From Bispira polyomma (Eukaryota), in contig OZ287752.1 of NCBI GenBank assembly GCA_965649765.1, positions 21,328,001-21,392,000 of the forward strand: DNA of 64,000 bases, in the 5' to 3' direction. Shown here piece after piece: positions 16,257-40,900 of this stretch. Position numbers and translations under genes: made by a program. Numbering within the stretch: position 1 is the stretch's first letter; every line of letters begins with the position of its first letter. Below the pieces are notes generated by a model that had not been told where the DNA came from, ran no database searches, and worked only from the letters and a program-made list of their open reading frames with translations.

Positions 16257-17785
16257 TATGGCTCCTTCACACCCCAAAATTGTTTCCAGGTCCTGTAAAA
16301 GCTTTCCAGCTGCCTCACATCCAATGAATCTTGCATGAATTATTTTAAAACAGAATTTCTACTCCAAACATCATCGGGAAAAGGTTCTAAAGTACTTTCC
16401 AGCAATTCTCCTCGATAACAGCACTGTTCCTGCTGACAGTGCCAAAAACCTGGGAGTTGCTATTGACTTTGATTTCTCCTGGGAGTTGCTATTGACTTTG
16501 ATTTCTCCTTTAAAAAACGTGCCTCCGACATCTGTCGATCCTGCCACTGCAATATCCATGACTTTTGTAAGATTCATCAGCACCTAATGCCATGGTCACA
16601 CTGAGCTTGTGATTCGCTTACGCAAATACAAATGACAAACGTAAACGCTGCATTAGCGTTTGCGTACCAAACGTAAAAACGTATGCTTGCATAAGACCAA
16701 AATGGACCAAAAATTGGAAATTTTAAAAAGTGTCTTTTTTTCGGACTGCTCGAAATTCCTTACGTTTTTGAAATTTTAACCATTTGCATAATGAACGGCT
16801 TTAAAACATAATTAAAACAAAATTGAAGCGCATTTTGCATAATTGGACGTGATTGAAGCGGCCCTAAACGTGTTACACAAGACGTTCCATTGGGTATGAG
16901 TCGTTTATTACACATTGCACCCGTTTTTATAGCAATTTCTGGTCAAAAATCAATATTTTCGTTTGACCCGTTATGCTTGGGTAGTGTACGCACACCCCAT
17001 TTGTTATTTCGTTAAACCCGCATGCTATTTTGTTCAACCCGTTTATCAAGCTGTTTAGTTTTTTTCATTAATTTCAATACGCTTCCATTTTGTTCACAAC
17101 GCTGTTACTTCATTTGATTCTCTTGAGTCGTCACAATTTTGTTTGTTTATTTTGTCGTGACGTATGCGGGTGCTTTTGTCATTTGCTCAATATGTCATCA
17201 AATGTGTCATCCGCTATTACGAGGCACCATGCTCTTGCATCATTTGAAATTTACAGTTTATTGTGCGGGGTAGACCCGCAGGGGCTAGTTAGTTCAGTGC
17301 TAACCGGTATTTTCCTTAACTTACACTCTGGGTTCATGACCTATCAACCCCTTTTCTTATTCGTCAGTGTGTACTAATTAACCCCACTTTTCCCGCTTTT
17401 TCCACAGAACCATCACTTTTTACATTGAAGTCAAATAGGCAACAACGCCATCTTTAAAATTTTACTTTTACTTTATGTTTATGTTTTATACTTACACTTT
17501 AATGTGGTTTTTATATGTACATGAACTCTGGAATGTTACCAAAGGATTTACTGTGATATGCTACAAACTAAGGAAGGAATCACGGACTTGCTGCTGTTTT
17601 ATGTGTCGACTCGCACTTTAGAGTCTTGCGAATATATGCTCGATCGAGCGCTAGTACAGGGACGTATCAATTCAAAATTGGCTTAATTGCTTCTTATTTT
17701 ACTCTTGAAGTTCACATCTATATTCTCCCTATAAATATATCCGCAGGTATCTAAGGTGCGCGTTCTTTGTGTTTACTTAGAGGCC

Positions 17786-18760
17786 ATGGCGCCAAGAAAA
17801 CAGTATGACTGTTCTAAATGTGGCTTTGCCCACGCGAAACCCATAGACGATAACTGTACCGGTAATACTTCAGTGGAAGAAGAGGTAGAAATGCAGAACT
17901 CTGTTCCTAGTGATGGTGTGACCTCAACCGAAATTAACTTGCAAATACTCACTGAACTGAAAGCTTTAAGTAGTCGGATTTCGAAGGTTGAAGAAAAGGT
18001 TGATCACAGGGAACATAGAGCCCAGTTCTCGGGGGCAACTCCGGGTCTGGATAGTCCTGTCCAGAAGTCCCAGGCAGCCCAGCTAGAGGAGTTATTGGTC
18101 CCGACCTTGCAGACCTTGAGAACATCCCAATCCCTGCAGACTGCTGTCGACTCACATTTAAAGGAGCTAGTCCAGATTAATGAATCAGGTACGTGCAAGT
18201 CACAACGTGGAGGCACAGAGACGGTTTGGGTTAAGAACAAAGTATCCTGGCCACAAAGTTACATACTAGGGGGACACAATAAATCTAGAGTCTCTTATGA
18301 CTCCCTTTCTATGTCTCAATGGGTGGCTGGTTTTGCCACCATTGCTAGGGAAGAGTCTGATGTTGATACTAAAAATAATATGTTAGAGTACTTAGCTGAT
18401 CTCATGGAAGACGCTCATGACTTTTCTTGGGCCTCTGCTAAGGGCAGCCATGCTGTGCTTTTGTGCAAGATGGAGGAAGGGAAAGTGTCGTGGGGAGATT
18501 CCCATAAGTTGGATCGAATAAGAAGGGCTCATGCTCAAAAGATAATAAGTCAAACTCAAACCAGTAATAGCAACCCCAAGAAAAGTCATGAGAAGCCCAT
18601 TCCTTGTAGATACTACCAAAAGGGTACTTGCCCTCACAAAGGTGAGCATGAGACTAGAGGAGTAACATACAGTCATGTCTGTAGTGAATGTCACAAAATT
18701 GGTCGCTCGTACTCTCATCCCAGTAAAGATTGTCGCAAAAGCTCAACAAAAAACGATTAA
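17786..18760 (+). CDS. Gag-like ORF1 of YR element 2 (N-terminal CxxC..H..C knuckle, coiled coil, C-terminal CCCH/CCHC fingers)
   Basis: Strong Kozak GCCATGG at 17786; CSKCGFAH...C; CRYYQKGTCPHKGEH, HVCSECH...HPSKDC. Confidence 0.9.
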   Translation: MAPRKQYDCSKCGFAHAKPIDDNCTGNTSVEEEVEMQNSVPSDGVTSTEINLQILTELKALSSRISKVEEKVDHREHRAQFSGATPGLDSPVQKSQAAQLEELLVPTLQTLRTSQSLQTAVDSHLKELVQINESGTCKSQRGGTETVWVKNKVSWPQSYILGGHNKSRVSYDSLSMSQWVAGFATIAREESDVDTKNNMLEYLADLMEDAHDFSWASAKGSHAVLLCKMEEGKVSWGDSHKLDRIRRAHAQKIISQTQTSNSNPKKSHEKPIPCRYYQKGTCPHKGEHETRGVTYSHVCSECHKIGRSYSHPSKDCRKSSTKND

Positions 18761-21303
18761 GGCACTGCAGTATTGCAGTGCCCGCTCTCTTATCTTCTGA
18801 AGCTGCAACAGACTGGGTCAACAAGGGTTATTCTGGTAAAGTGTCTAAGTTTCATACTAGAACTGTATATAGTAGTAAGGATCAGTATGGCAGCACTTGC
18901 TGGAAAACAGATTGGGCTAGGTATCAAAACAAGTCCTATGCTGATATTGTTAAAACAGGCAAACTTGTAAATAGTGATATCAATAGTAAATGTGTGAAAC
19001 CACTGTATAAACATGAATATATGTCGCATGTGTTGAAAGATGTAACCACCAACAAAATGTCAGGTGGAGCAAACAATGGATTTTTTCCCCGAAAAACCAT
19101 TACTCGTGTACAAAGACACAGGCCCAAAACCCTCAAATCACAAACCCATGTAGGCGCTCACAACCTAATTAATATCACTCGCCAGGAACCAACAAGGGTT
19201 TGTGCCAAGGTTAAATTTAGTCGCCTGAATAGCCCTGAGGGAGGGCAAGTAATCACTAATAAGTGTAAACCTGTCCACAAAATCCAAAAATGCCCCTCAA
19301 TCAACACACAACAATGGGTCACACCCACAAGTAACAAATTTGCACTCCTGCAGGACAATGGTTCCTCTGGGGGTACCCTGGCCAGTGATATTACCGACCG
19401 ACATGCTCCCAGTACTGATAATGGTTGTAGTACACGAGGCGCACAATTCCAAGCAAATACTAAAGTGAGCAAAAGTTGCAATGTACCTAAATTAGATAAG
19501 TATGACTTGGAATTGCAAGTAAAACCTAAAACACGGGATCTAATTAGAAAAGCAAAGGATGAACCCCAGTTCCAGCAGTGGAATGATCAAAACTCGGATA
19601 AATATGGTTTTATACCACTTGGTAAGCTTCGACTTCCCATGACAGATAAACGAGTTAAATCAAACAACACTTTGCTGGACTTACATAGCGTTATTAAAGA
19701 CCAGAACTGTCCCAATTTTATGGCCCCTCAGATAGAAATACAATCGGAATTAAATCCGGATGTTTGGGAAAAATACCTAGTCCATTATTGGGACAAACAG
19801 CTCCTATTCTTAATTCGCTACGGTTTCCCCCTTGACTTTCAAAAAGGCAGTAAGCTCTCGCACACAGAGAGAAATCACCAATCCGCGACCCAGTATCCGG
19901 ATGACATCAAGGCGTACCTAAACGAAGAAACAAAATTTGGTGCCATGCTGGGCCCCTTTGAAAGTGTTCCAATTAAAGACCTCCATATTTCACCCTTTAT
20001 GACTAGAGAAAAACCGGGTGGGGCTCATCGGCGAGTCATAGTAGACTTAAGTTTTCCACATGGAGAGTCGGTAAACTCGGCTGTAGCCAAGGACAACTAT
20101 TTGGATACTGCTTTTGCCCTCACCCTTCCCACTATTGATACTATTACTAGCAAAATTGCCTGTTTAGGCAGAGGAACGTTACTCTATAAAATTGACGTCA
20201 GTCGGGCGTTCCGTCACGTGAAGATAGACCCGGCTGACTACAACTTGTTAGGACTAAAATTGGGAAAATATTACGTAGACTCATTTCTACCCTTCGGATT
20301 TCGGCACGGGAGCGCCATTTTCCAACGCCTAAGTGACGCGGTTAGGTATATCATGCAAAATCATGGCTGTGACGTCACCAATTACATCGACGACGTAATC
20401 GGTTTTGGTGACATCACGGAAAGCAAGCGTTCATTTGACCTACTGTATAACCTATTACAAGAACTAGGTTTTGCTCTCAGTCACAAAAAACTGGTGCATC
20501 CCAGCAGTGCAGTCATATGTTTAGGTGTATTAGTCAACACGGTAGATCTAACAGTCTCCCTTCCGGATGAGAAACTACAGGACATCAATGCCCTAATTCA
20601 AGACTGGCAAAATAAAAAAGTATGTACTAAGCGAGAATTACAGTCCCTCTTGGGCAAACTTCTCTATATTTCAAAATGTGTAAGAGTCTCAAGGTTGTTT
20701 TTGAACCGCATGTTAGACGTCCTAAGATCAGTGGGAGCCAGTCAGAAGATTCAGCTCACACCAGAATTTTTCCAGGACATAAACTGGTTCACAAAATTTC
20801 TACCAAAATTTAATGGCAAAGCCTTCTTTGAGCATGAGCCTGCCACTGATTGTATTCAGTTAGACGCTTGCCTGCAAGGGTTGGGGGGGCGTTGTAACGA
20901 CGAAGTATATGAATTTTCTATTCCTCTAGGCTACCAAAATATGACCATAGTCCACCTTGAAATGCTTAATATCCTGGTGGCTATTAGGCTCTGGAAATCC
21001 ACCTGGGCAGGCAAAAGACTTGTAATTCAATGCGACAACGCTGCTGTAGTTATAATCTTGAACTCAGGCAAAACAAGAGACCTTACATTAGCAGCTATTG
21101 CCAGAAACATATTTATGGAGGTGGCTTCTGCTGACATTAGCCTTAAAACAATTCATATATTGGGTAGATTAAATACTGTGGCTGATCTGCTATCTAGATG
21201 GCACATCACCACAGCCAGTAACCAAAAGTTAGAAGAATTGATTCGTAACCCCCAATGGCTCAAGGTTCCACCTAGCATGCTAGAAATAGATTGGTCTATT
21301 TAA
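18730..21303 (+). CDS. Pol: reverse transcriptase plus RNase H of YR element 2
   Basis: KIDVSRAFRHV, LPFG, YIDD; RNase H LDACLQG, HLEMLN, CDN, ADLLSRW; no Dam-methylase domain follows. Confidence 0.95.
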   Translation: MSQKLNKKRLRHCSIAVPALLSSEAATDWVNKGYSGKVSKFHTRTVYSSKDQYGSTCWKTDWARYQNKSYADIVKTGKLVNSDINSKCVKPLYKHEYMSHVLKDVTTNKMSGGANNGFFPRKTITRVQRHRPKTLKSQTHVGAHNLINITRQEPTRVCAKVKFSRLNSPEGGQVITNKCKPVHKIQKCPSINTQQWVTPTSNKFALLQDNGSSGGTLASDITDRHAPSTDNGCSTRGAQFQANTKVSKSCNVPKLDKYDLELQVKPKTRDLIRKAKDEPQFQQWNDQNSDKYGFIPLGKLRLPMTDKRVKSNNTLLDLHSVIKDQNCPNFMAPQIEIQSELNPDVWEKYLVHYWDKQLLFLIRYGFPLDFQKGSKLSHTERNHQSATQYPDDIKAYLNEETKFGAMLGPFESVPIKDLHISPFMTREKPGGAHRRVIVDLSFPHGESVNSAVAKDNYLDTAFALTLPTIDTITSKIACLGRGTLLYKIDVSRAFRHVKIDPADYNLLGLKLGKYYVDSFLPFGFRHGSAIFQRLSDAVRYIMQNHGCDVTNYIDDVIGFGDITESKRSFDLLYNLLQELGFALSHKKLVHPSSAVICLGVLVNTVDLTVSLPDEKLQDINALIQDWQNKKVCTKRELQSLLGKLLYISKCVRVSRLFLNRMLDVLRSVGASQKIQLTPEFFQDINWFTKFLPKFNGKAFFEHEPATDCIQLDACLQGLGGRCNDEVYEFSIPLGYQNMTIVHLEMLNILVAIRLWKSTWAGKRLVIQCDNAAVVIILNSGKTRDLTLAAIARNIFMEVASADISLKTIHILGRLNTVADLLSRWHITTASNQKLEELIRNPQWLKVPPSMLEIDWSI
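18748..18782 (+). promoter_or_regulatory. Programmed -1 ribosomal frameshift signal (A AAA AAC, 6-nt spacer, 9-bp hairpin)
   Basis: The heptamer is in the correct gag phase (ACA AAA AAC GAT TAA), pol is in the -1 frame, and the stem-loop is GGCACTGCA-GTAT-TGCAGTGCC. Element 1 has the same layout (15065-15097, minus). Confidence 0.85.
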
Positions 21304-21311
21304 TTTTACAG

Positions 21312-22303
21312 ATGTACCCTCAAAGTTAAGACGTATAGCTACTCAAGCCTCACGCAGAACTCACCAAGCTTTTAGACCAGCCACTGAGCGGGCTTACACA
21401 AATATGTTTAGGATTTTCTTAGCCTTCTGCAGTTTTGCTCAGGTCAGGCCTCAGCTTATTTCTCCATTAATCATTCTGGCTTTCTTAGAAGTATTGGTGG
21501 TCAATAACGTTTCCTCTCCATCTATAGCCAATTACTTGTCGGCGATTAAAGCCAAAATGGCCCTATACGGCCTTGATGTGGGAGCTTTCGCAGATCTCAG
21601 AATTAAATATTACCAAAAAGCCTTAGTGTTAAACAGTCCCTTTAGGGCTAAAATAATAGCCATTATAGACATCCCACTTCTGCAACAAATTGTGCACACA
21701 TGTGATAGTATGTACATGGGGTTAGTTTTCAAAGCAGTGTACTTAATTGCATTCTTCTCCTTTTTAAGAATATCTAATTTGGTTCCTCATGCGGTTGGTC
21801 AATTCTCTCCTCTAGTACAACTAGCTCGGGGGGACGTGTTATTTGCCCCCCCTGGCCTTCATATCATAATAAAATGGTCTAAAACATTGCAGGCCAAAAA
21901 TGTCGTAAAAGTCCTGAAAATTCCCACATTGAATGGTTCACCCCTCTGCCCAGTGGCAGCCACAAGAATCTTGTTAGCAATTACCCCAGGACATAAAAAC
22001 TCCCCCCTCTTTCAATTCAAAAAAGCCCAAAAATGGTTTCCTATGATAGATTCCCAGATTAGAAAAAACCTCTCTCTCATACTTACCCGACTGGGTTTAC
22101 AGCAATCCCCCATATCCTTCCACACCTTCCGTCGTTCAGGTGCCACTTTAGCCTTTAACAGTAATGTACCAATCCAAGATATTCAGAGTCATGGCACCTG
22201 GACCTCGGATTGTGTGTGGAAGTATATCGTTCAGGACCACAATGCCTCTGACCAGGTGGCCCTGTCTTTCAAAGCTCTACTCTCCAACCCCACTACCTCC
22301 TAA
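21312..22303 (+). CDS. Tyrosine recombinase of YR element 2 (frame open from the splice acceptor at 21312; first ATG at 21404)
   Basis: Catalytic R (FLRISNL), K (WSKT), HxxR (HTFRRSG), HGTW and Y (VWKY). Confidence 0.95.
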
Positions 22304-22840
22304 TTGGGCTTTGGGGCTCTATTCCCACACCTTTTACAATATTAATATATACTTAAATGTTAAACATAAATCTTTTGGGCCACCTTACCACCTTATTTCA
22401 TCTTAAATCAATTCATTACATGTAATAAATATACTTTGGCAACCTTAACTGAAACTAAGGTTACCTCCTAATTCAAATTTTCAATCTACCTTACCTAACC
22501 ATAAGTTTTAGGCTAAGGTAACCTTAAACTCACTTTGAGGTAACCCTAACTTCAAGCTAGGGCTACCTTAAACTAAAAATTTTCCCAACCTTAATCTGAA
22601 AATCCTCAGGCTAAGGTCACCCTAAACTTTTTTCTCAGGTTAATCTCTTGGTGGTAGGGTGGCCCTCTTAACATAGTATGTAAATAAATGTTAGATATAA
22701 CATAGACGCATTAAACTAATATCCCCAACTCTGCCTTTTTACTTACCCGTGTCACATACCATATTAGCTTCTAGGGTAGGGCACTGTGCACGGAAGTTTT
22801 ATAAAACTTTATAACAGTTTTTGTCCCCCATTTGTAAAAA

Positions 22841-25800
22841 ATGGGTACAGCAACTAGAAAGAGGAAAGCACCACCTTTACCTTTACTACAACCAGAGGAC
22901 AAAATTGTGGAAGAGACTCAGATTGATGACAGTCAGATTGACACTCAGATTGACACTCACGTGGAAATTTTCACACAAGACCTTCCAGACCTTCCAGATG
23001 TTTTCCAGACCCAGACCAAGAAAATTGCCAAAAAGAGGAGCCAGCTAGTCAAATTGACCCACACACAGGAGGAGAATTTGTTGGATTGGTTGAAGGACAT
23101 CCCGGAGTTGTGGTCACGTGCAGCTGAGTATGTGCATATCCGGCAACCAGAAAAGATGGCAATGTGGTTGCAAAAAGCAGTCGAATATGACAAGACTGGT
23201 TAGTTCATATTATTTTACCTTAAATTACTTGTAATTATAATGTATTTTACAGCCTCGGTTAACTGTTCAATTTGAGGGAGTAAATTATTGTTTGGATAAT
23301 TAGATTTACATGGGTATAATGTGTGGGAGAGTATCCGGTTATTATATGTAATTTTATATGTCATTGTTCCCCCATTTTAATTAATGTAGCACCTCTATTA
23401 AGGAGGGAGTAGGCTCTTGTTTGGATAATTAGATTGATGTGGGGAAAAGTGTTGGATATTATCTTTCTATTATATCTCATTATATATGTCAATATAAATG
23501 TCATTGTTCCCCATTTTAATTAATGTAGCCCCTCTATTATTTGGCCATAGTGAAGGAGTAGGCTCTTGTTTGGATAATTAGATTGATGTGGGGAAAAGTG
23601 TTGGATATTATCTTGCTGTTATATCTCATTTTATATGTCATTTCAAATGTCATTGTTCACCCTTTTTAATTAACGCAGTGGTTACATCTTGGGAAATATT
23701 TCCCGGAATCGAACGAAAACATTGTATGTCGGGAAGTCAGGAAGTAATTAATTATTAATCACACATCGGAAAGGACATATCGGATAGCCTTGTTATTTAT
23801 ATTTTTTATTTAATTAGATTTATTATCGTTTATTAATATGTAACTTAGTTTGCAAAACATATCATGGAAAATGTTATTAAGTCCGCCGAAAATTAAAAAT
23901 GTAATATTACCTTTTGAACCAAGTATATCCAATTAATTTGTGTTTTCTTTTCAGTGAAGGTGGAGAGTTGAACAATTTTCGGTTTTTTTTCAGGGAAGGT
24001 GCAGAGTTGAACAATTTTCATTTTTTTTCAGGGAAGGTGGAGATTTTAACTGGTGGAGAGTTAAACAATTATCTTTTTTTCAGTAAAATTTTTGTTAATA
24101 TTCTATTTTGGTATTTATTTTTCTATATATAATACAACAAACGTTTACATCTTTGTGTTATTATTTGGTCATCACAGCCCTTCTCGAATAAGTTTTGGTG
24201 TTTCCCAATATGCGCTTCCCGTAATGTTTCCCGAAATACAACGTTTTTGTTTGATTCCGTTCCATTTTAATTAATGTAATTAATGAATGTTGGCCCTCTA
24301 TTATCCGAACATAGTGACAGAGTGGGGTCTTGTTTGGATAATTAGGTTGATGTGTTGGGATAATGTGTTTGCAGATTATCTGGATATTATGAAACATTCT
24401 TCCCCCATTTTAATGAATAAATGAATGTTGGCCCTCTATTATCCGAACATAGTGAGGGAGTGGGGTCTTGTTTGGATAATTAGGTTGATGTGTTGGGATA
24501 ATGTGTTTGCAGATTATATGGATATTACAGCATGTTCCATTGCACCTTTTTATCTACAGGGGAACAATTGCTGCAGTGGTGGACAAATCTTCGCAACATC
24601 TATGGCCGTAACACAGACATTCTCACCTCTGGATCTGCACCTGCAAAACACACGATGAGGGTGAATTGAGTTCTAGAAAAGTGTGCCTTCCTGAGTGGCA
24701 ACATCGGGCGAATGACAAAGAGGAAGAACACTCTCTTGAAGTACGACCGGACCAAGTTGTGGGTCAGTCCATCATCCACTGAGCAGTCCACTGAGCAATC
24801 CACTGAACAATCAAGTAACCCATGCAGTCAATCAGGATCCTTGAATGATGGGTAAGGGCAGGATGAACGCACCCCAGATTCGCAGTTGTTAAGGTCTAGT
24901 TCGCAAACACCCAAAGGGTCAGGTGCTCGCAGCTCTTTGAGTGACTCAATCAGTGGTAAGCTATCGCAACAGCTGAATGACACTACCTACCTGCAGCAAA
25001 AGATGAATGACTACTTTAAGGAGGTCAGGAGCAGAAAAACCGGTCGTCGTCAGCAATTTTTTTAACATTTTATGTACAGATGCTGAAGCCATCGAGGATT
25101 GCTACTGGTTAAACTGCAGAAAGGACTTGTTGGCTGTGGTTGATAGGTACCTGCTGAGGTCCCGCCGGCCACCCAAATTTCCACGACTGTTGCCCGGTGG
25201 GACCTTGTCTAGCGTTTTAAAGGCCAGTGGAATTTTCAAAGTGAACGAGTGTTTTTCAGAGCCAGCCTCACCAGGATGGCTTTCGATGGAAATGTCACCC
25301 GTGGACATGTCTATGTTATGTCACGCTTCCACCTCTACCCCAGCTTCAGGTTCAGGCATGTTAAATGACAATTGGACACCCCTGTTGGCCTGATGTTGTG
25401 TCTACTTTCTGCACTACTGATGTTGTGTCTTCTTTCTCCAATACTGGTGGTGTGCCTGGTTGTCTACTTTCGGCAATACTGGTGGGGTGCCTCGTGTGTC
25501 TGCTTTCTCCAATACTGGTGGTGTGCCTGGTGTGTCCACTTTCGGCAATACTGGTGGTGTGCCTCTTATTTCTGCTTTCCCTAATGCTGGTGGTCTGCCA
25601 CGTGTGTCCCCTGTCTCCAATGATGGTCATGTCTCTGCTTTCTCCAATGCTGGTGGTGTGCCTTCTATGTCTCCTGTCTCCAATGATGGTTGTGTCTCTG
25701 CTTTCTCCAATGCTGATGTTAGGCAAGTGTTCCTAAATACTGAACATCAACATTCTAGCCTTGCTCAAGGTAAATCAACAGTCCGAGTAGCCAACCAGGT

Positions 25801-25903
25801 GGGAGATGTACTAGCAACAGCAGACGACCCTGGCATCATCTCCATTGAAAAGTGCCACCACAGTGGCCAAATTAAGTGGTTTGTCATAATTTTCCAGTTT
25901 TAA
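22841..25903 (+). pseudogene. Harbinger 1 accessory MADF/Myb-SANT protein gene (exons 22841-23198 and 24560-25903) with BESS-like segment and 11-aa repeats; stops/frameshifts
   Basis: LTHTQEENLLDWLKDIPELW...KMAMW|GEQLLQWWTNLRNIYGR...FL is MADF-like; phase-1 intron; in-frame TGA near 24668; C-terminal 33-bp tandem repeats (SAFSNTGGVP) at 25430-25715. Confidence 0.8.
23260..24530. repeat. ~130-bp repeat arrays (TTGTTTGGATAATTAG) and a ~555-bp inverted-repeat element within the MADF intron
   Basis: Five related units (23260-23680, 24270-24530); inverted pair CGGAATCGAACGAAAACATTGTA (23703) and TACAACGTTTTTGTTTGATTCCG (about 24237-24259). Confidence 0.7.
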
Positions 25904-25949
25904 TGCTATTGTTATATGATTTTTGGGTCATAATTATTGGTTTATATTT

Positions 25950-28900
25950 ATAACAATAATGTTATAGTCTTCAATGTTTTTTTAGTATCTGACCAAGTAA
26001 TGCTAAAATTATTGGACTTGTTATACACCAGGCCTTTAAAAAAAATTCACCCCCAATGCCAAGTTTAGTTGTCTGTGAATTTGAAATATGTCATAGTCCG
26101 AATGATATCGTTATATGGTTTTGGGGTCATAATTATTGGTTTATATTTATAACAATAATGGTGTAGTCTTTGTGTGACCCAATTGTAATTGAAGGGTGGT
26201 ATCACCATTGAGTTTGAAATGCTTTTTGACCTTTTCAAAGTTGGTCATGAGCTTAAACCATCCTTGATGTTCTTGTTCTCTGGAAGTGCATATGCATCAA
26301 CATCCAAGTTGTTCTATAATAAGTAATGACACAAAGTTGTCATCCACTGTATTTTCACCCCTTTTGTGGACTGCAGTATTAACAGATATTAAAATATGTC
26401 ATAGTCCTAATTATATCATTATATGGTTTAATAGTTATAATTATTTTTTTATAGTTGTATTAGTAACGAGTGTGTCTTTAATATTTTAAGTCTGTGGTTA
26501 AAGTTTGCGGCCTGTCAGAAGTTGAACTTGTGAAGCAGTAACATAATTGCTAAATAACATAATTGAATGACATTATTGAATCACATTACTGCATAGATAT
26601 TTTTAAGATATTTTCATGAAATTATTAATGGAAATTATCAATTAAAATTCAAAATTATTAATCAATATTTTAAATAAAATTTTTCCATTCCATTCTTGAA
26701 TAATATCATGATTCAAATCACTGTATTGTCAATCATATTGATCAAGTGAAATCTTGTTTAAATAATTTGATTGATGTGGGAAATTTGTAAATTTTGGGGC
26801 TCCTCTAGAATCAGGTTTCTAATTTAAATCCATTTCTCAACTCCATTCTTAAAGAAAGTTATCAATTAAATCACTAAATAATACTATAAATAAAATTAAA
26901 CATTATTACATCAACTTTTTAAAATACATCCACTACTCTCCTCTGTTGCTTTGTGACTGAGCCCCACAGTCCTCCATCTGCATCCACTTTTTCGCAGGTG
27001 ACCTCCATTGTTTACCTGTAAAATCTTCCTCAACTTCTGTACAATCTTGAGTGCCCTTGTTGAGCACCTTAACCGGAAGTTTGGTTCACTTTTGCCCTCT
27101 TTCTATGTGCCAGAGCCAGCCACTGTGAAGTCCTCCATCTCCTCTGTTGCACTGTGCCTGAGCCAGCCCCACAGTGCTCCATCTCCTCTGTTGGCCTGTT
27201 GAGTGCCCTTGTTGAGTGCCTTAACCGGAAGTTTGGTTCATCCTGTGGCGACAGTTCTGCTCACATGAGGTGACCTGGACATTGCTCCATTCCATCCTCC
27301 AGTTCACTGTCCGTGACATCCACATGCCTTCACTTGTTTTGCAGGTGAGAACCCCACAGTCCTCCATCTCTGTTTCACTGTGACATTCACAGTACTACAG
27401 TACTACATTTCTTTGGTTGCACTGTGCCTCAGCCCCACAGTCCTCCATCTCTGTTTCACTGTGAAATCTTCCTCAACTTCTGTACACTCTCAAGTGCCCT
27501 CGTTGGGCTTAACCAGAAGTTTGGTTCATCCTGCAGTGACAGTTCTGCTCACCAAAAGGGATTAAAAAATGAAATTGTCCATGGTGGGACTTCCGTTCCC
27601 TTTAATAGAGTGCTGCCATGAAGTGACCTGGACGATGCTCCATTCCTTCTTATGCAATTCTTCATTGTCAACCACTGTGGCCCTCTCAGTGGACCTCGCA
27701 TTCGATCCCCCGGCTTTGGTGAAGCATGTCGCATTTGTTGCATTCCTCCACTTCACTGTGTGTGAGTGCTACATTGTTCAATCCTTTTAGGTGGATGACC
27801 TCCGCAGTAATAGAATAAAAAAATAAATGAAATAAAATTATAAATAGAATAAAGAAATGAATAAAATAAAATTATAAATAAAATAAAGAAATAAATAAAA
27901 TAAAATTATAAATATATAAAAAAATGAATAAAATAAACTTATAAATAAAATAAACTTATAAAACTTGAAACACATATACACGTTATACAAGTTCTACTAC
28001 TATCAGTGGGAATGTCTACAAGGCTGCTGATGTTATTATTCTTGTCTTGATGTATCTTCTTTCTGTAGTCATTAATGTTTATTACTTGTAGCCAAACTTT
28101 CTTTTGGCTGGAAGTCCACGATCTGTAGTAGTTTTCCAACCTTAACGCTTGATAGCTACTGTGGCCCTCTCAATGGACCTTGCATTCGATCATCCGGCTT
28201 CGGTAAAGCAAGTCGCATTCGTGTTGCAGATTGTTGGGTATCTGCATGTGTAACATTTCTACCTCACTGTCATCCTGGCGTGTTTGATAGCTGATGAAGG
28301 GCTGCTTAAAAATGGCAGTGCATCTTTTGGGTTGCAGATTGTAGGTGACATCCACTTACCTGCACTGGTCTCTTCATGTATGAAGGGTCCAATGGAATTG
28401 TCCTTGGTTGGACTTCCTTTCCTTTTAACAGATTTCTGCTATGAGGTGACCTCCACCTTACATAATGCTTGCATTTATCAAAAAACCTACAAAACCAGTC
28501 CACAACATAGTGGACTTTTGCTATATTAATGATAAACTTTCGGCAGGAGTTCAGCAAGCTGACATACCGTTAAGAGGTTGGTCAAACTATTAAAATTACA
28601 TAGTCAAATGAAACAAACCCACAAAATAAAACAGAATTATTAATAAAATAAAATTATGGAATAAAATATAATTATAAATAATATAATATAATAAGATAAA
28701 ATTAAATATAAGATTATTACATAAATTTTTAAAATTGCATTCCTCCAGTTCACTGTGCATGACCTATACATATATCTTCCACTCCTTTCTTTGAGGGGGA
28801 CCTGCACTTGCACTTTCTTCTTGTGTGTGACCCTCACATGCCTCAACTTCATCCATTGCAGGTGACCTTGCCATCCACTTTGTTGAGATTCCCTGTATCC

Positions 28901-30760
28901 TCTTCTTCCAAACTATTATCATGCTCTTCCAGAATTTCTGTCTCTGGATTCCACTTTCTATAACACCACATCATGCAGTTACATTTTCTCTCACCTCTCT
29001 ACACCATTTCCCATTTGTGAGGTGTGATATCTGTTGACTTTTGATGAAACTGTATGGACAAAGGGCACTATCTTATGAAACTTACATATTCAAATAAAAC
29101 AAATTTATAAAATGAAATTAAAGTATAAATGAAATAACATTTTAAATTAAATAGAATTACAAATAAAATAAAATTATAAATAAAAAAAAATATGAATAAA
29201 AAAATAAATTACACATTACACATACACATTGTCAATTACATTCAACTCTTCCAGTTACACCTTCAGTCGTGTAATAAGTTGAATGAAGGCACTCTACCAA
29301 CTCTTGCCCGGAATTCTTTGAGTTTATTTGTTGCTATGTGCTTCTCTCTGTTGAGTTTGATGATGTCGTCTAGTGACATATCCATTTTGTCCTACATGGA
29401 TGCAAAGTCATAAATGAGTCATTGAAACTAAAATTAAACTTAAATCAAATAACATTATAAATAAAACAGAATTATAAATAAAATAAAATTATAAATAAAA
29501 TAAAATTATAAATAAAAAAATAAATTACACATTACACATACACATTGTGAATCACATTCAACTCTTCCAGTTACACCTTCAATCATGTAATAAGTTGAAT
29601 GAAGGAACTCTACCAACTCTCGCCCGGAAGTCTTTGTTTCTATCTGCTTCTCTCTGTTGAGTTTGATAATATCATCTAGTGACATATCCATTTTGTCCTA
29701 CGTGGATGCAAAGTCATAAATGGGTCATTGAAAATAATTAAACTTAAATCAGATAACATTATAAATAAAATAGAATTATAAATAAAATAAAATTATAAAT
29801 AAATTAAAATTATTAATAAAATAAAATTATAAATAAAAAAATAAATTACACATTACAGATACACATTGTCAATTACATTCAACTCTTCCAGCTACACTTT
29901 CAATCGTGTAATAAGTTGAATGAAGGAACTCTAACAACTTTCGCCCCAAATTCTTTGTTGCTATGTGCTTCTATCTGTTGAGTTTGATAATATCATCTAG
30001 TGACATATCCATTTTGTCCTACGTGGATGCCAAGTCATAAATGGGTCGTTGAAAATAATTAAACTTAAATCAAATAACATCATCAATAAAACAAAATTAT
30101 AAATAAAATAAAATTATAAATAAAAAAATAAATTACACATGAATTACGGTGTATGATGCATAAAGACAATATTCAATTTCTTGTTATTCAATTATGTTGT
30201 TCAGTAATTGACTCTTCAGTTGTCATTTAATAATATGCCACAGTTTAATTGGCATCAGCAAAGTACATCGTTTATCCAAATTTGTCATAAATAATGGTAA
30301 TCGGATTGTCCTCATCCAATAATTTTTCAGTATTGATGATACATAATGGATGGGCTTGATTTCCACCATCTCCAGTGATGCCCATTTTGCTTGAACACCT
30401 CATCCCTCCTAGTTTCCTTAATTGTCAGTATGTACATGCATACAGCAAAGAAAAAGTTGAATCTTCTTTATCTCCATCTCTGAAAAATATGAATATGTAC
30501 AATTAAAAATGAATAAATTAAAGTAATCAAATAAATTGAAGTAAAATAAAGTAAATTATGGTCCTTCTTACGGAAGTTTGCCGTGCCATAGAGATGTGAT
30601 ACTGCGATGGAATTATATGTGCTCCGGAGAAACTTGTGTACTTGTGTTACTCCCAGAGTTGCAGTTTTTTATGTATTGTTGATGTACTTATGAAAGTACT
30701 TGTGATGTATCTCAGAACTCAGTATCTCAAATGTCCCAGAGTAGCATTTTTATGTGATGT
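25950..30760 (-). other. Cargo region of Harbinger 1: mosaic of duplicated, degenerate minus-strand coding-like segments separated by A-rich spacers
   Basis: Lies between the 3' ends of the MADF and transposase genes; GC-richer blocks with internal duplications (26940-27790, 27940-28480, 28740-29080) plus a triplicated ~310-bp unit. Confidence 0.6.
29110..30140 (-). repeat. Three tandem ~306-321-bp units, each encoding DKMDMSLDDIIKLNR (ALYREF-type UAP56-binding motif)
   Basis: Motif at 29391-29347, 29697-29653 and 30018-29974; the middle copy is the 61-aa ORF 29506-29691. Confidence 0.85.
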
Positions 30761-31201
30761 AGTTATGAAAAGATGTTGCATTGCATAAGTATGTGTAATG
30801 TACTTTGTTTTGTTACAAATTAAAATAAAAGAATTTTGGATTTCAGTTACTTGTGTTATTTCATCTTATCTTTTTATTAAAATTTTACCAAAGGGCTAGT
30901 TATTTGGTCTTGGATTTGAACCCAGTAGTAGCACTTGTTGGTGTCTTAAACACTTTAAACACTTTGGAGTTTGAAAGTCAGATGACTACTTATTTGCTCC
31001 TGGGTTTGAACCCAGTTGATGGTGGTTAAGATAAATGTCCCTTGGAAATTCAGATGACTAGTTGTTTGCTCCTGGGTTTGAACCCAGTTGATGGTGGTTA
31101 ATTGCCCTTTGAAAGTTAGTTATAAAATAAAACAACAACAAGAAGAAAGCTTTATTCACAAAATGACATCTTAATTACAAACATTGGATACAAAGTATAC
31201 A

Positions 31202-32465
31202 TTAAATCATTCTGTTCTGCCAGGAAACAGCACCTATTGGGTTGTTGTAGTACCCCTTCAGTAAGGCACGCTGAGCCTTGGCTTCACTGTTTGCCGTGTT
31301 TCCCTACAGTATCTCATCCATATCTTGCAATGCTGCCCCATTTCTCCAATCCCCTGTTTGCAGATTCTGAGTGTTGGGCATTTGGATACCTCACTCTGCA
31401 AATGTTGTGCAAGATGCAGCAAACTGTGGTGATCAGAGTGGCTACTTCTGGACCATAGCGCAACTTCCCATTGAGGCATCTGAACCTTTTGACGAGGAGC
31501 AGGAGAGGCGGTAGTTAAAAATCTTCACTTCATAAGAAAATGCCCTATGTCCATACGGTTTCATCATGTATCTTGTGTTTGCAAACGCATCATCTCCAAT
31601 CAAGAAATAGGGCATGGGTTGGTCATCACCGAGCAAAGGAGTATCTGCTGGAAGTGGGAGCATGTCATCCTCTAAGGCTTTCTTTAAGTGAGAGGCATTC
31701 CAGATCTGGGTATCAGAGCAGCAGCCATTTGCACCAACATAGCGGTAGATGAATCTTTAGTCAGCATCCATTACAGCCAAAAGTATAATTGAGGTGAACC
31801 ACTTGTAGTCGGAGAACTGCGATCTACTGTGAGGGGGCTTCAATAGGGCGACGTGTTTCCCATCTATGGCACCAATGCAATGGGAAAAGTTCCATCTTTT
31901 CTCGAAAAGTTCTGCGATATTAGTCCAGCCCTAGGGTGTGTCTGGAGCAAATATAACTTCATCGAGGTATTCCGCTTCTATGGCATGGCAAACTTCCCGG
32001 ATAATCACAGACACGAAAACCATAGGCCAGAGACACGAAAACCATAGGCCAGAGATCTGTAGTCTGAACTAGTAGCCAGGTACCTCAGGATGATGGCCAA
32101 CATTAAACCTGGTTCTAGGGGAGCTATTTAATTGACTGTTTTCCTTTGCAGTCTTGGTTGCAGGCGTTGGACCAGTTCTTGAAAGAGGACAGGATCAATC
32201 CTGGTGAAATTCCTATAACTGGCAGGGTCCTCAGCCTCAAGCTCCTGCAATAGGTGCTCGTAGAATCTAAAGAGTGGTCTCCTAAGTATCTAGGGGCTGG
32301 TCCACACCTGTCTCTGCCTTCTTCTCACCACACCTACCTGTTCTTCCATACCTACCTGTTCCAAATATTGAGTTGCATTAAATATATATACCGCATCGCT
32401 TGTACTTGAACTATCATAGCTTGTTGCAGGGCCTGGAATTGCTCCAATACAAAGTTAAAAGCCAT
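31202..32465 (-). pseudogene. Harbinger 1 DDE transposase (HARBI1-like), frameshifted
   Basis: YRNFTRIDP, LAIILRYLAT, IGAIDGKHV, LIGDDAF, IFNYRLS and CCILHN motifs, with stops and frameshifts. Confidence 0.92.
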
Positions 32466-35286
32466 TGTTGAAAAATCCAGTGAACAGTAGAACAAATTTA
32501 AGTAATGAGGAAAATATGTACGATCGACTCCTATATATACCCCCAATAACGGCTACAAAATTGTACCCTGCAGAAGGGAAACGTCCCATACATATTTAAT
32601 GCGTGAGAGACAAGATGAATGAAACTGAAGCGAAACTGAAGCATAATTGGAGCATGCTTGAAGCATGAGGAAAGCGGCTAAAGCATAACAAACGGATCCC
32701 AAACAGAATGGGCGGGATCAAAACGTAAACTAGACGTCAGTAATACGTGACCAAAACGTATTAAACATTTCCGAACGTGATAAATAACATGCCCGACGTG
32801 ACAAGCGTGATTTAAACGGCAGCTAAAAATCACATTCCATGCGCGTTAATATACGGGGTAAGCGGGAAGTAAACGGTTTAAACATGTCTGAAGCGGCTTG
32901 GATGTAATTTTGGGCTTATGCTCATTTACGCTCAAACAATGGACTCGTTTACTTGCGTTTTCCTACATTTGCAAAAAAAACGTAAGCGAAACCTACTCAG
33001 TGTGATCACGGCATAAGTCAGGCATGCTGTTAGAGTTAAAAATGTCCCAGTGTCAAGTCGACTTGACTACTGCATCTCACTACTATGCACACAAAACCTT
33101 TCCTTAATTGCCCTGGCTGTCTTGAGTTGTGTATTGAATTCAAGGTAATTGTCCTACTTTTTAAGACCGACCATAAGTGCAGCAACCTGCCTACTTATCA
33201 TCCATGCTGCCTCTCAGCTATCTTACCAGAGGAAACCGTCTCCCCACTTATGGCTTTAAACCCAACAAACTGGCTGGTTCAAAATCATTTAAGGTTGCAG
33301 CACCTGCTGAGTAGAATGGTAGTCTTCGAACTGAACATTTGTCTCCTGGTCACTACTCAACTTGGATCACAAGCCATGTCTCTTACGGGACTATTCTTTT
33401 GCTTATTGAATTGTATGTGCACCTCACATTTTTCCTTGGTAAAGATATGAGGGTCAAATTAAAGGTTAAGGTGGTGAATATGTGTATGTAAGTAAAGTCA
33501 GTGAAACTGAAGTTTTAGGTATTTATTATCGTTATGTTAGAAGTAAGTATGCACAGGTAGGGTTTAAAAAGCATTTTTTTTAAATATGACAATTTTAAAA
33601 ACACTCAAGCCAAACTAAGAAAATTCAGGTATAGAAGAGGCAAAGGTGACGGGGACAGCAGAAGAAGCTTGATAATTTTGATAGAGACATGACCAGACGA
33701 CAAAATATCTCTACAAGCCATCTGCCATAATATTTTGGAGAGAAATATTATTATTAAAAGCAAAAGTTGGCACTGACCTTCTAAAAGTGTGAAAACTATT
33801 AGTTAAGGGGTATTCCCACATGTGTGAGGACTGAACCCAAGGCTGAACGCACATGTGTTTTAACTATTGGGAAATGAGGTTCAGTGGCACTGCCAAACAG
33901 AGAATCAGAGGATAATATAATGGTTCTCGAACGGCCTTTACTGGACACAGTATCCAATTTTTAAGTGAAGGAATTTGCATGATGTGAAAATGAGATCTAG
34001 TCTGCTGATCAAATGTGATTGAGGCTGGCCAACTATGACGTCTTTCCTTAAGAGGAAATTACGTGTTGGGTCAAACTTGGACCTTATCACTTCTGAACCT
34101 TGAGATTCGGACAAATGCAAAAATAAGCTAATAGGAAAATAACCCTGAATAGAGGGGAGTCACCAAGTCTCTGTCCTAGTATAACTTCGTGGCCATGTGT
34201 TTGATAGCTGCCAAGTAATTGTTAATCATGTTAAAAGAAGATCAAGTCTGAACTAAATGTTCCAATTAAATGTAATGAATGTTTTGAACTAGTTATTGTA
34301 GGTCATTGCAGTCTTGGGACGTAGAACACAGTTAATTCTCTGCCATGCTGAGGCTGTGAAGTTTTGGCTGATGTGGTTAGAACCTATAATTATATATTCA
34401 AATCAAAGTTGAAATAGTGTAATAGAATAGTGTGCCACGTACAAGAATCACTTAAGATGTTGACCCTCTGAGGGGGTTGGTCAGAAAAAAAACTTGATAG
34501 TAAGTCAGCTATAACATTTTCTTGACCGTTAACATGTTGAATTTTAATTGTAATGTCATGTGCAGCTGACAACAAAGAGCCAAAAAATCTTCTTTTGTCG
34601 TATTGGACCTAATTACCAGGACTACAGCCATATTATCATATTATGCGTTTATGGCTCTACTGCTCACCCCATACCCTTAAAATTAGAAGCATGTTAAACA
34701 TTTCGATAGACAGATATGGATAGAATTTGGCCATAGATGTTATATAGTGGAGTAGCATATACCTGATCTATGTATACTGCCCCTAACCCTGTAATGCCCC
34801 AGTCACCCTGCGGTTATAACCATTTAGAGATCTATGACCTTAAAATCGAAGGAAAACCATCGATCACTAACGATTCCCTAGGATCTTTGCAATATGTTTT
34901 GGTGGCACTCACACATATTTTAAACTTTTTGGGGGTTAGCCACCGGTCGCCTACCAGTCATACGATGGCCCACATTCGATCAACGGCAGCTCTCTGGAGG
35001 TTGTAGCGATTATGTGAGATCTGTAAGGACTTGTTGTGTGATGGTCGGCTACTAACAAAGACCTCGGTGCAATTGTCGGCGTCCAGTCTGAGATTGTCAT
35101 GCGAGTATCAAAGACTTCTCGCTGTTTATCGCACGGTGATCCTTACTGGTGGCACCTCTATTAAAGACCTATCGAGGATCAAACCTCATCTGGCTATAAA
35201 TACCGGTACCAAAGCAACCACTACTCATTATGCATTTAGTTATTGAGCAGTAAACATATCAGATTTAGTATAAGATATATTATAAG

Positions 35287-36087
35287 ATGGCATTTGTCGG
35301 ACCAGCAGCAAAAGCCCAAATCTTGGCTGTAAGAAGGCATCAGCAGCAGCGGCAGGCAGCTGGCCTAGTCATGCTGCTATACTTTAGGAGTAGGAGAAGG
35401 AGAGCAAGGCAGTATTGGGTCAGGCCCTGGATCAGCAGGCGTCTGCAGTTTGGCAACTATGACAACCTCATGCTAGAGCTAGAATCATATACCTCAGAAT
35501 GGAACCACCTATGTTTTGAGAGTTGCTACGGAGGATGACCCTCCGACTGACCAGGAAGGACACCAACTGGAGGCCTACCCTACAGCCTGGCATGAAGTTG
35601 GTCATCACCCTGAGGTACCTTGCATCTGGTACAGCTACCACAGCCACAGTCAGATTGTTCACTGTTCAACAACTCTGACCTGAAGACAAATATTGATAAT
35701 GAGACACTTGGTCTACCACCTGTTGAGTTACTTCCAGGTGATGTTCAGGACATACCTTATTGTCTTTGGGTTGGCCACTTACATGATGAAGCCATTTTTG
35801 CAACGACAGATGACAGATGAAGAGAGAATATTTAACTACAGGTTATTTCGTGCCCGAAGGATTGTTGAGAATGTCTTTGGTATCCTCAACAATATGTTTC
35901 GTTCCTACTGACTACTCTTCAACAAGACCCAGAAACTGTTGAGTCAATTGTGTTGGCATGCATTTGCTTACACAATCTAATGTGGAACAGGTATCCAGCA
36001 TTGCAGAATGCGGGGATGGATCATGAGGGAAACAATCACTAAGTTATTCCTGGAGCCTGGAGAGATGAAGCTGTCTTAGGAGACTGA
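35287..36087 (+). pseudogene. Harbinger 2 transposase, internally deleted
   Basis: YWVRPWISRR, LVITLRYLASG, IFNYRLFRARRIVENVFGIL and ACICLHN; the GAIDG segment is missing. Confidence 0.9.
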
Positions 36088-36987
36088 ATGAATTTGACTA
36101 TTTCTCGTGTATATTCTATAATTATGGTTTGGATAGAATTATTGTTACTTATATTTGTTATTTGATTATGTGCAGTAAAGTGACTTATTGATACAATAAA
36201 TTGCCTCTGCACATAACTCATTCTTGAGATCCTATTTGTTAAAACTGGTATTCAAAACGCTAAAAGCTTTCGTGAAAAAGAGAAGCTTGACCATGACCAC
36301 CTGCAAAGAATCTTTAGCCTCCAACTGGATGGATAGGACCCAGCGGCAGCGGGCCACTATATGAAGTGTTTATGATTTGTCTAAGGATAGGATATGTCCT
36401 ATCAATGGAACTAGGGACCTTCAAATCAACTGACCAAATCCTTAGCCACTGGACCACCGGAGACCATGACGTTGACCTTGTAAGAACTTCAGATAATACA
36501 TGTTCTGCTTTACCATGTGTAAAAACAATGAAGACTGAATCATTGTGTCATTATGGGCCCCTATAGATTAGGCAAAATGACACAATGATTGTCTTCATTT
36601 TTTTTCCTGCAATATCACAACATTTATTATCTGAACTTGGTATTATTGCTGACATTCAGATAAAGGGACCTTGTATCCTGTGAATCACAGATTTCAACCA
36701 AAAATTGGAGGGACGACATTAATGTAACAATAATAATGTGTAATAAATTATAAAGTTCAATCTTACTTCCAAAAGTACCAAAAATTTTAAGTTTTATTCA
36801 AAAAGGTAAAATTGATCTAAAAATGTTTAAGTTTTATTCGAAAAGGTCAATTTTCTAGTTATTAATTTATTTTAAATAACTAAGTCAGTAAGTAACAACA
36901 AATAAATTTATTTGACAAAACAACAACATCCATGCTAAAATTGCAATAGTCCACCAGAAAAATCAACCACAACAGTTCACTAAAAAT

Positions 36988-37930
36988 TTAAAAAGCAACA
37001 ATGTAATATAACATCCTCCCCCCACACATACAATGTAATATAACAGCCCTCCACCCTCCCATGAAAGTCCAACTACTGCTGTGCGTGGCCGCCGTATTGT
37101 TGCCCTGTATAATGTAAGTTGTAACAGCATCTCCAGTGGGGGTCTCGCTCCATTGGTTGGTCTGGGGTGTGCTTTGGTCTTGCATGTTATTAAGCATAGT
37201 CAAAGTGAAGGAGGTCGACGCTGAAGCATGGCCAGGTGGAGCAGAGGAAAGCCGCACAACCGACTGAGAGAAAACTGGCTGTAGTTCTGGGTGTGGTGTT
37301 GTTGGTTGGGTTGACATCTTGTGGCGCATCATGGCCTGGAATGTCTCCTGCATAAAAACAGTCCACTGCTCGTCGGTTAGACTAAAATACAAGCAGTAAC
37401 AATTGCCATTAAATCTTCATGCAATATACCAGTGAGCCCCATACTCTGTCCCTGTTTGGCCAGCACCCGGGTCTTCCTGGCCCTTGTTTTGAAGTCACTG
37501 AGAGACTGGTCGTAGAACATGGGTTCTGTTGAGAAGAAGGCCACCAACTCCTCCTCCTGCTGGCCAGTCAGTTGGTCCATACACTTCATCCTCTTGGTGG
37601 GGCACCATCATAGTACTTCCTCTTTCTCCTTATCCAGGGGTAAAGTACCCTGGTCAGGGTCCAAAGTCAGGGTTCCGGTGCAGTGCCTTTAGCTGTGATA
37701 GTGCCTGCAGTAGTGACAGTGCCCTCAGTTGTGACAGTGGCTTCTGGTGCAGGGCTGACAGTGCCCTTAGGTGTAACATTGGCTTCTGAAACAAATTTCA
37801 CAGTCCCAGCCAAAGAGCCCAACTCAGTTTCATCAGGAAACAGGGGATCCTGGGTGACAAGAATATCATTAGTGTCTGCATTATTCTTTCCTTTCCCCTT
37901 ACCCTTCTTCAAAACAATTTTCAGAGCCAT
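36988..37930 (-). pseudogene. Harbinger 2 MADF-like accessory gene
   Basis: LTGQQEEELVAFFSTEPMFYDQSLSDFK (MADF N-half), an intron at the same position as in Harbinger 1, and BESS-like LTDEQWTVFMQETF. Confidence 0.75.
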
Positions 37931-40900
37931 TAAACATTATGTACAAGTATTTAAAAACTATCGAGTAATAACATGTCCAGTAAAAACGTGTGGATACACA
38001 AAATACCTCAAAACACTGATTACTGAACACTGAAAAGAATTTATTGACACCCTTTAGGACCTTTTTGTTCTCTAGTTGGTAGTTTGTTTCCGATTGGTCG
38101 CCGTCCAAGATAGGAGGAGTTTAAAGAAATAGCACAGCGTTCTGCGGTAATTCTATTGGACGGCGATAAGGTGGTGAGACTACTCGGGGATTGAAGGCAG
38201 ACTGGTGGCAGACTGAATAGAAATCAGTGAATAGCGCGCGGGAACTTTTTATTGATGTTTGATATGTCGGCAACAGGTGGTGAGACTGCTCGGGGATTGT
38301 TTGTTCAACTGATAATTAAAGATTAGTCGCCGCCCTGCTGGGATTACTATGTTCATGTTCTAAGGAATCAGTCGGGGATCAACCGGAGATCAAACAAAGA
38401 CCTCCAGCAACCCTTTAAATCATAGAGAGGAATTACTTGTAATTCATGTAACCTCTCTACGACAACAACTATTATAAGATCATTAAGGATCTAACCGCAG
38501 TTTGACTGGCCCTTAAGGCAAGCATCAATAAATACCTTGTTCTCGTGCTTCCACATGATAGGGTACAAAAACATTACCACATTGTATGAGTGGAGGAAAT
38601 TCACGAACCATAATACGTCAGCTTTCATTTCTTCTGATATTTTCAATCATTTGGCCTGATTGTTGTTTCTGAACGCCATCAGTAACCTGTTGATGAAAAC
38701 ACGAGCCAGCTTGACACATTTGTGTATATAGAGTATTTTACTGAGTATTGATTGGAATTTCGTTCGTGAAATCTATAATTCGTTTACTACTTCTAAGAAA
38801 ATATTGTATGTTTCCTTTAATTTTTCCGGTGTAATACTAATTGTGCATTATTCTATGTCAATATCTATGCCAAGGCAGGTGATTTGTAAACTGGGTTTAG
38901 AATTTTTTTCGGATTAAGAAACTAAGATATGTTACTAGTTTGTATAATTTGTCAAAAGCTGTATCTCTTTCTTGATATGTCGAAACACTGACATAATCGC
39001 GATATAACAAAATACTTTATCTTTACTTTTGTTCATAGTATGTGCTATAACACCAGAGCTGGAACACAGCCAATCTGTATACCCAGCCGTTAAGATACTT
39101 CTTATCTTCAAACTAAATACCAAATTTCATTGTGTTGACTAGGTCAACCATTAGGTTGCAAAACGCCATGTCCAACCTGAATATCATGGGGTTATGTAAT
39201 TTCAAAATGTGTTCAAATATGTCGTCAATAGTTGAGAATTTGAATGCAAAATTCACCCCATAGAATTGATGTCTGTTTACATTATCGTGAAACGAGCCAT
39301 CACTAGGATGAGAAAGGTTTAATATAACACACCTTTTCGAATTGTCTTTGGGTCTGGTCAGCAATAAAGAGCAGTGAAATAAGTTACTATCTATTTCTTA
39401 ACTAATATTGCCCCACATTGTTTTTCTTTCTCAATTTATTGTTACAATGACTTATGCTGGAGAACAGAATGGTGGTAAATAGTTTCCTTAACATTTAGAA
39501 TCTGAGTATCTTCAGGTGAAAGCAGAAAGCCAATTTAATATATTGAATAAGCAATTCGTCTGGGTAGTATTTAAGAGTTTTGTCCCAATCCTTAATATTC
39601 AAGCCTGAAATTAGAGGGATCTTTGCCGTTTTGTTATCAGGATATCCCGTGTCCTTAATTATTTGTGCTATTTCAGTCATTTGAAGCACTAAGGTGACAT
39701 GTAATGGAGCCCTGTCTGGTCCAGTAAATTTATATTTGGTTTCTGAAACAGCCAAGAAATCTTTGATTTTGTTAGGAAAGCTGGGTCCCTTTCTACAGTG
39801 GTAGCACCTGTAGTGGCATGTGTGTGAATTTTGTCTCGTTCAGCTGAGAAATCGCAACCTTACCTTTATGGCAGGATTTAATTGCCTCGATCTTCATTGG
39901 TCTGTCATTACTGACTAGAAATCTTATTTTTACTGATATCTATTTAGGATTTATCAATAATGTTTGCAATATGCTCAGTATAATTTACATTATATTTTTT
40001 CTTTACAATCTACACCTTTCTGGTAAATATACTATGCATTATTTGCTACTTGTTTATCATCTATATTCAGTGGTTGAACCATATGCTTGTCCGGGATGTC
40101 CCCAACCGAATTAGTGAGTATAAGCCATGCAGAAAATCTGCTAGTTACGAACATCTCCCCTGCTGGTGGGTAGTCGCATTTGTAGTATTGGTCTTTTTGA
40201 CCAATTTCCCCATCCCCAAATATATAAAACCCTAATATCTCTGATTGTTCACATTGGATGAATACAACTGATCAACTATGATTCTTTCCAGGCAAATAGT
40301 ACAACCAGTTAGTGACAGAAATAAACACCCTAGACCCTTGTGGGTTTCCATACAAAACATTGCTTTTAAAAAAATTGTTCATTAATATTTGAATTCTGCA
40401 TGGTAAATGTTTTTGTAGACAGTAGCACAGTGCCAACATACATGCTTATATTGCCTGTGATCTGATTTATGAGAACATTTTCCTAAATTATCAAGCTTAC
40501 AGACGACTTTCGCCGTCGCCCCATTGTGACTGGAATTCCTGCCTTTGAGATTAATTATTGCTAGCTGCGACGCACTGAAGCGGTTTAGCGCCCACTGAGT
40601 GATGTCACCACATGATAATCTTCCTTCCTCAACTTCCGTCGTGTTAAGGGCCCAGGCCATGTGATCAACTTCCCCGGGCAATGAGAATGTTTCCGGAAGT
40701 GATAACACCACTTGCTGTATGATTTCTTTCGATACCGCAGAGTCTGTTACCTGTAGCGCGTTCGCCAATTGGCCTGATGCCCCCTGGCGTGATGAAAGAT
40801 CATTGAAAGGAGGACGTTTGTGTGCTGATCCGCGTCCCTCATTCACTCATCTAAACTTCAGATTACTAGGAATGTCCGTGGTATTAAATCGTCCTGACTT

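Follow-up and report, generated by a model that had tools for sequence, protein, structure and literature searches.

Transposons that have captured host genes for RNA export or silencing act via small RNAs, and viruses recruit the TREX complex with proteins (PMC7785250, PMC13534243, PMC3141038, PMC6177440). Herpesviruses recruit both ALYREF and UIF for intronless mRNAs (PMC3141038, PMC6177440). The N-terminal UAP56-binding motif (N-UBM) binds the RecA2 lobe of UAP56 weakly, at ~28 uM, and mRNPs recruit TREX via many such motifs (PMC12823420). Gene capture by transposons and parasite proteins engaging UAP56 are both known, while a DNA transposon that retains a captured UAP56-binding motif as protein was not found in the literature searched, nor was any paper treating Harbinger, transposon and UAP56 jointly. 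The 64,000-nucleotide stretch of Bispira polyomma DNA analysed here as a whole, referred to as the window, holds a Harbinger-type element with cargo captured from a host UIF/FYTTD1 mRNA, and this cargo may once have encoded an accessory factor for mRNA export.

The element spans 16588-33013, and is bounded by 18-bp terminal inverted repeats (TIRs) that have two mismatches, with TAA flanking each end. Comparison of the repeats places the left target-site copy (16585-16587) and left TIR together at 16585-16605 on the plus strand, and the right TIR at 32996-33013 on the minus strand, followed by its target-site copy at 33014-33016, such that TIRs and a TWA target duplication are both present at this single locus. 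PIF/Harbinger and NuwaII elements of the PHIS superfamily have in common with it a DDE transposase, short TIRs, a 3-bp TAA target and, putatively, a Myb/MADF-type gene (PMC4482050), whereas the window's element differs from them by ~5 kb of modular cargo, which sits between the transposase gene on the minus strand and a MADF-like gene on the plus strand. With its neighbouring bases the target reads C-TAA-G (16584-16587 and 33014-33017), which fits NuwaII as well as PIF/Harbinger and, as one locus, is not decisive between them.

The transposase gene (31202-32465, minus strand) is intronless, and is broken by stops and frameshifts. It was recognised as a Harbinger DDE transposase by PF13359 (DDE_Tnp_4), accepted on the match of one piece with an E value of 2e-5 that lies just under the cut-off, and its relatives share 50-63% identity with it. 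The second gene (22838-25900, plus strand, end approximate) is likewise broken by stops and frameshifts, and was classed as MADF-like through a weak tblastx match that lies inside the MADF-annotated gene of one related Harbinger (L074) and the equivalent gene of another (L073), a direct Pfam match not being found for this interval. Upstream of this gene is a nested retroelement with reverse transcriptase, RNase H and integrase (17230-22770, plus strand, ends approximate). It is one of two tyrosine-recombinase retroelements in the window, the other being at 11950-16250; the nested one has long open frames. A second, different Harbinger at 34800-38520 is also broken, with its transposase on the plus strand and a convergent gene on the minus strand, and lies head-to-head with the first. 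The element at 16588-33013 is dead, unable to move by itself, and most of its subfamily are decaying relics.

Within the cargo, a series of modules with AT-rich spacers between them (26870-29000, minus strand) is co-oriented with the transposase, and these are possibly the decayed remnants of a multi-exon third gene. Nearer to the transposase is a short block (30417-30479, minus strand) that is putatively an exon, with a conserved acceptor and a GTAAGT-type donor that is kept in older copies and lost in the window copy. Two short pieces of the transposase gene (29042-29096 and 30572-30633) are inverted within the cargo, as they are in other copies of the family, and could serve as a fold-back or antisense RNA source.

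Three tandem units with a period of ~320 nt each carry a 15-residue UAP56-binding motif on the minus strand, at 30018-29974, 29697-29653 and 29391-29347. These positions, together with the 18-bp TIRs that enclose them, bear out the first-pass annotation, made from the sequence of the window, which had reported three such motifs inside a Harbinger. The motif lines up with residues 3-17 of human THO complex subunit 4 (ALYREF), and mouse REF2 agrees with it at 15 of 15 residues, which excludes a chance origin; its sequence is intact, and at that level it is what a functional N-UBM peptide would require. Unit 1 (30018-29890, minus strand, lower end approximate) consists of the motif followed by a TAG, such that its ORF ends after 13 codons, and it has the same 10-nt deletion as unit 2 (29697-29506, minus strand), in which the deletion follows an intact motif and shifts the frame. 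Unit 3 (29391-29261, minus strand) joins the motif to UIF exon-2 sequence, and is the only one of the three to hold the 40-codon ORF that is the family form, running from an ATG at 29385 to 29263. An in-frame TAG directly precedes all three motifs.

Other features to which significance had been attached are the result of local decay or slippage. The 61-aa ORF (29506-29691) was rejected as a product, being created by the frameshifting deletion in unit 2. The ATG-TAG that precedes one motif had been read as a mutated start, yet ATG-TAG is present in 2 of 40 units, against 15 with ACG-TAG and 5 with ACA-TAG; as ACG is the commonest state in the family, the ATG before the TAG is most simply explained by CpG decay. 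Similarly, the triplication does not represent a meaningful amplification of the motif, but ordinary slippage, because elements carry between one and three units, and units 1 and 2, which share the deletion, are the closest pair. The copies do differ at three synonymous sites in the 45-nt motif, as first described, although these differences constitute two haplotypes present in many other elements, rather than three local events.

Sequence comparisons identify the donor of this motif as the host's single-copy UIF/FYTTD1 orthologue on contig C10. When a profile of the units was compared with 1.84 billion proteins, the best match was a 67-aa prediction in a relative, which also matches the sequence following the motif in the unit (63% over 43 aa). 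It corresponds to one exon, starting inside the first Asp codon of the motif, in an animal gene that is spliced, and exon 1 of that gene was not found within 10 kb. Both the relative's exon and turtle UIF contain, on direct reading, the GISPLNR block of vertebrate UIF. The host genome has a single orthologous exon (C10:40501164-40501298), which is free of stops and aligns to the relative's exon at 82% across the GISPLNR block, this being taken as presence of the block in the host. The preceding host exon, 2.4 kb upstream, closes with the initial half of the motif, and a GT donor follows. The same phase-1 intron within the motif is therefore found in the host gene on C10, the gene of the relative and turtle FYTTD1, and no intron is present at that motif position in host ALYREF. 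It is this shared intron by which the gene at C10:40501164-40503743 (minus strand) was recognised; a Pfam search of the genome did not return it, and no description of UIF/FYTTD1 in invertebrates was found in the literature searched. Two proteins that Pfam FYTT misses, P0123 and P0129, have the appearance of additional UIF-like proteins from invertebrates.

The unit follows exon 2 of the host gene for ~35 codons, and the captured stretch amounts to ~44 codons, comprising the end of exon 1 and exon 2. Hence the capture was not limited to the motif, and the sequence downstream of it is not unrelated, both of which had been supposed. The intron that splits the motif in the host gene has already been removed in the transposon, meaning it was the spliced host mRNA that was captured, and the capture must be old, because at two residues the transposon still agrees with the relative's gene, whereas the host gene has since changed. 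The source had originally been taken to be ALYREF, and descent from a 5' fragment of that gene would account for the match of the motif to mammalian ALYREF and REF2. However, such an origin is refuted once the comparison with host ALYREF is made: of 32 shared nucleotides, 23-28 match between the units and the UIF exon, against 14-21 for the ALYREF genes; the homology to UIF runs for ~25 codons past the motif; and both the host ALYREF (contig C6) and its intron-poor paralogue (contig C4) differ from the units in the second half of the motif. Neither descent from the 5' sequence of host ALYREF nor its RG tract, RRM or C-terminal motif was found in the unit, in keeping with the original view that this is not an ALYREF gene, having no RRM or RGG tract. 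The paralogue (L070, C4:20157249-20161540, minus strand) is a second ALYREF gene with most of its coding sequence in one exon, and is possibly a retrocopy; several of its silent motif states equal those of the window's subfamily.

The cargo is a trait of the transposon family, rather than a peculiarity of this locus or an insertion into an element already dead. Genome-wide, there were 76 DNA matches to the unit, and 74 matches to a degenerate pattern of the motif, host gene included, while a control pattern had none; the motif copies number ~70, and every fetched locus has the motif among other modules of the same Harbinger family. The expected neighbours are a family transposase, co-oriented with the unit and upstream of it, or the MADF-like gene, in the opposite orientation and downstream; one or other accompanies at least 29 of 42 unit loci, counted from the best 40 matches of each list only. 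Older copies hold two distinct motif modules, type A, to which the window's unit belongs, and type B. The type-A copies have common breakpoints and a nearly identical downstream block, and are therefore attributable to one capture. No intact element was seen among the copies, with the full ORF present in only 8 of 40 units, and among the clades that spread are some whose motif is interrupted by a stop (codon 6 or 12) or altered by replacements (codons 13-14). Cargo modules of the family also occur in open frames of 341 and 203 codons at C1:12590047 and C3:65917979 of the host genome, making these candidates for an intact third gene. Four related Harbingers from other animals (L071-L074) were searched for the motif cargo and none had it, so it may be confined to the host lineage; the profile search of 1.84 billion predicted proteins found no such cargo either. 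Homologues of the downstream exon-like module were sought and none was found, and the type-B module had no usable match in the ESM Atlas.

On the internal branches of the unit tree, changes in the frame of the motif comprise 15 synonymous against 7 replacement or stop, where the neutral expectation is 22-24% synonymous. The excess persists when the analysis is restricted to copies found by DNA search (15 synonymous against 6 replacement, p = 7e-6), and when each shared state is counted once (12 against 7, with ~24% synonymous expected, p ~ 3e-4), these being counts from searches that favour conserved copies, and from a parsimony that includes homoplasy from shuffling between tandem units. Hence the excess suspected from three sites in the window is seen across the family, and is specific to one frame: there is none in the other two frames, nor in codons 17-38 (4 to 5) or the upstream flank, which are neutral-like. 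As codons 17-38 show no constraint, the importance of a basic, possibly RNA-binding tail is not supported. The genome-wide list of motifs adds further silent states at Leu and Arg codons, and there are at least four distinct silent haplotypes, none of which equals the present host UIF exon. These silent differences cluster in codons 7-16, with 7 fixed in 48 nt compared to 11 in ~750 nt upstream, and synonymous change is ~10x denser in the motif than in flanking sequence, more than selection by itself accounts for. To reach such density, either old paralogous modules must have undergone mosaic conversion or host messages must have served again as templates, which is why a neutral rival stays alive. 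The synonymous excess is suggestive of purifying selection on the peptide in the past, re-templating from host mRNA being the live alternative.

Two routes by which the motif might have been expressed can be read in the family. Firstly, an ATG is present at codon 3 of the type-A unit in an AAAATGG context (23 of 40 units), where the host has Val, and a start there would give a peptide of 40-44 residues beginning with the motif. Secondly, older copies have a GTAAGT-type donor after the short upstream block and an AG shortly before the motif; the UIF block is then followed by a further GTAAGT donor, and the type-B block opens with an AG. The junctions of this third-gene model were examined one by one, and their splice phases look compatible, with the donors lost in the window's subfamily; in some copies, type B and the neighbouring module are open for 130-340 codons. 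The arrangement is suggestive of a third gene that was spliced and contained two motifs.

A Harbinger ancestor, as these comparisons show, took up the 5' coding part of the spliced host UIF/FYTTD1 mRNA, which was placed downstream of the transposase gene, in the same orientation, and duplicated into at least two modules. Under the history we propose, active lineages then kept the N-terminal UAP56-binding motif at the protein level as silent sites drifted, a step that is statistical and subject to the caveats above. The most likely product would be a small accessory protein, being either the spliced third gene with two motifs or the peptide of 40-44 residues, which would dock on the RecA2 lobe of UAP56 and help load TREX onto the intronless transposase mRNA; the translation, the binding and the benefit to the element are those we infer. 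The best reading, to which we assign a probability of about 40%, is that in the ancestral element the units were an accessory peptide or exon, which recruited UAP56 and promoted export. It is ranked first because the transposase gene is intronless, a problem to which the herpesviral answer is to recruit ALYREF and UIF. The fuller proposition, that a DNA transposon family evolved its own mRNA-export adaptor, as a spliced third gene with duplicated UIF-derived motifs of which at least one intact copy is expressed, is more tentative.

Against an adaptor stand the stops within the motif, and the replacements at codons 13-14, in clades that nevertheless spread. The spread of stop-bearing clades, and the position of the motif after an in-frame stop, would be expected if the peptide were never used by the transposon, with the silent pattern instead inherited from host genes, via more than one capture or patch repair from UIF/ALYREF-family mRNAs, and then shuffled between tandem modules. 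The clustering of silent differences in codons 7-16 would also fit such neutral cargo, as would the silent states shared between the window's subfamily and the host ALYREF paralogue on C4. However, none of the silent haplotypes is that of the present host UIF exon, the type-A breakpoints and downstream block imply one capture, and the indels by which older type-A copies differ from the UIF exon preserve the frame, making neutrality a serious but improbable account.

An export adaptor also has to be weighed against explanations in which the captured piece acts on silencing. A translated peptide could occupy the N-UBM site of UAP56 as a decoy, weakening UAP56-dependent silencing, such as the handling of piRNA precursors; the role of UAP56 in piRNA export is one described from Drosophila, and would have to extend to this animal. 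Constraint limited to the motif, the failure to keep the remainder of UIF, and the multiplication of the motif within elements, which would raise avidity for a weak site, are all consistent with a decoy. Yet host adaptors are abundant, and a site with an affinity of 28 uM would be difficult to titrate against them (PMC12823420); a block of bulk export would also be expected to carry a cost, which leaves this explanation unlikely and ranked slightly behind neutral cargo. Less probable still is a small-RNA strategy, in which the capture serves as a source of antisense piRNAs targeting host UIF, its coding being incidental. We know of no role for UIF as a silencing gene. There is precedent for transposon capture of RNA-export and piRNA genes (PMC7785250, PMC13534243), and the host gene has changed two motif-adjacent residues since the capture, but targeting needs nucleotide identity, whereas the transposon has diverged mainly at silent sites and kept the peptide.

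If the peptide was made and did bind, a cut-and-paste transposon would have retained, at the protein level, a docking motif of its host with which to engage the machinery of export. Whatever its function, the cargo clearly shows a DNA transposon capturing a gene by way of RNA, and the shared intron identifies an invertebrate UIF/FYTTD1 orthologue. With UIF/FYTTD1, the unit has in common the N-terminal UAP56-binding motif and the exon-2 block, and the donor gene shares the position of the intron in the motif of turtle FYTTD1; the transposon holds only a short part of that gene, with the intron removed, duplicated and embedded in cargo, and is not a UIF gene. The N-UBM of ALYREF/THOC4 and that of LUZP4 belong to the same motif class, and a basic stretch follows the motif in both, as it does here (PMC4344508), whereas the unit has no RRM, C-terminal motif or RG-rich tract, and ALYREF was not its donor. 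In Drosophila, TART-A with nxf2, and telomeric elements with piwi and aub, likewise carry part of a host gene for RNA export or RNA silencing (PMC7785250, PMC13534243). Those are retroelements operating via antisense piRNAs, whereas here it is a DNA transposon with apparent constraint at the level of the protein. Viruses offer the parallel at that level, and pUL69 of HCMV is reportedly one of their TREX recruiters. With KSHV ORF57, HSV ICP27 and baculovirus 25K, a parasite factor engages UAP56 or its adaptors for the parasite's own mRNA (PMC3141038, PMC6177440, PMC12548385). The viral recruiters are proteins with tested function, whereas the Harbinger family, known from sequence only, presents a captured host motif carried within a transposon.
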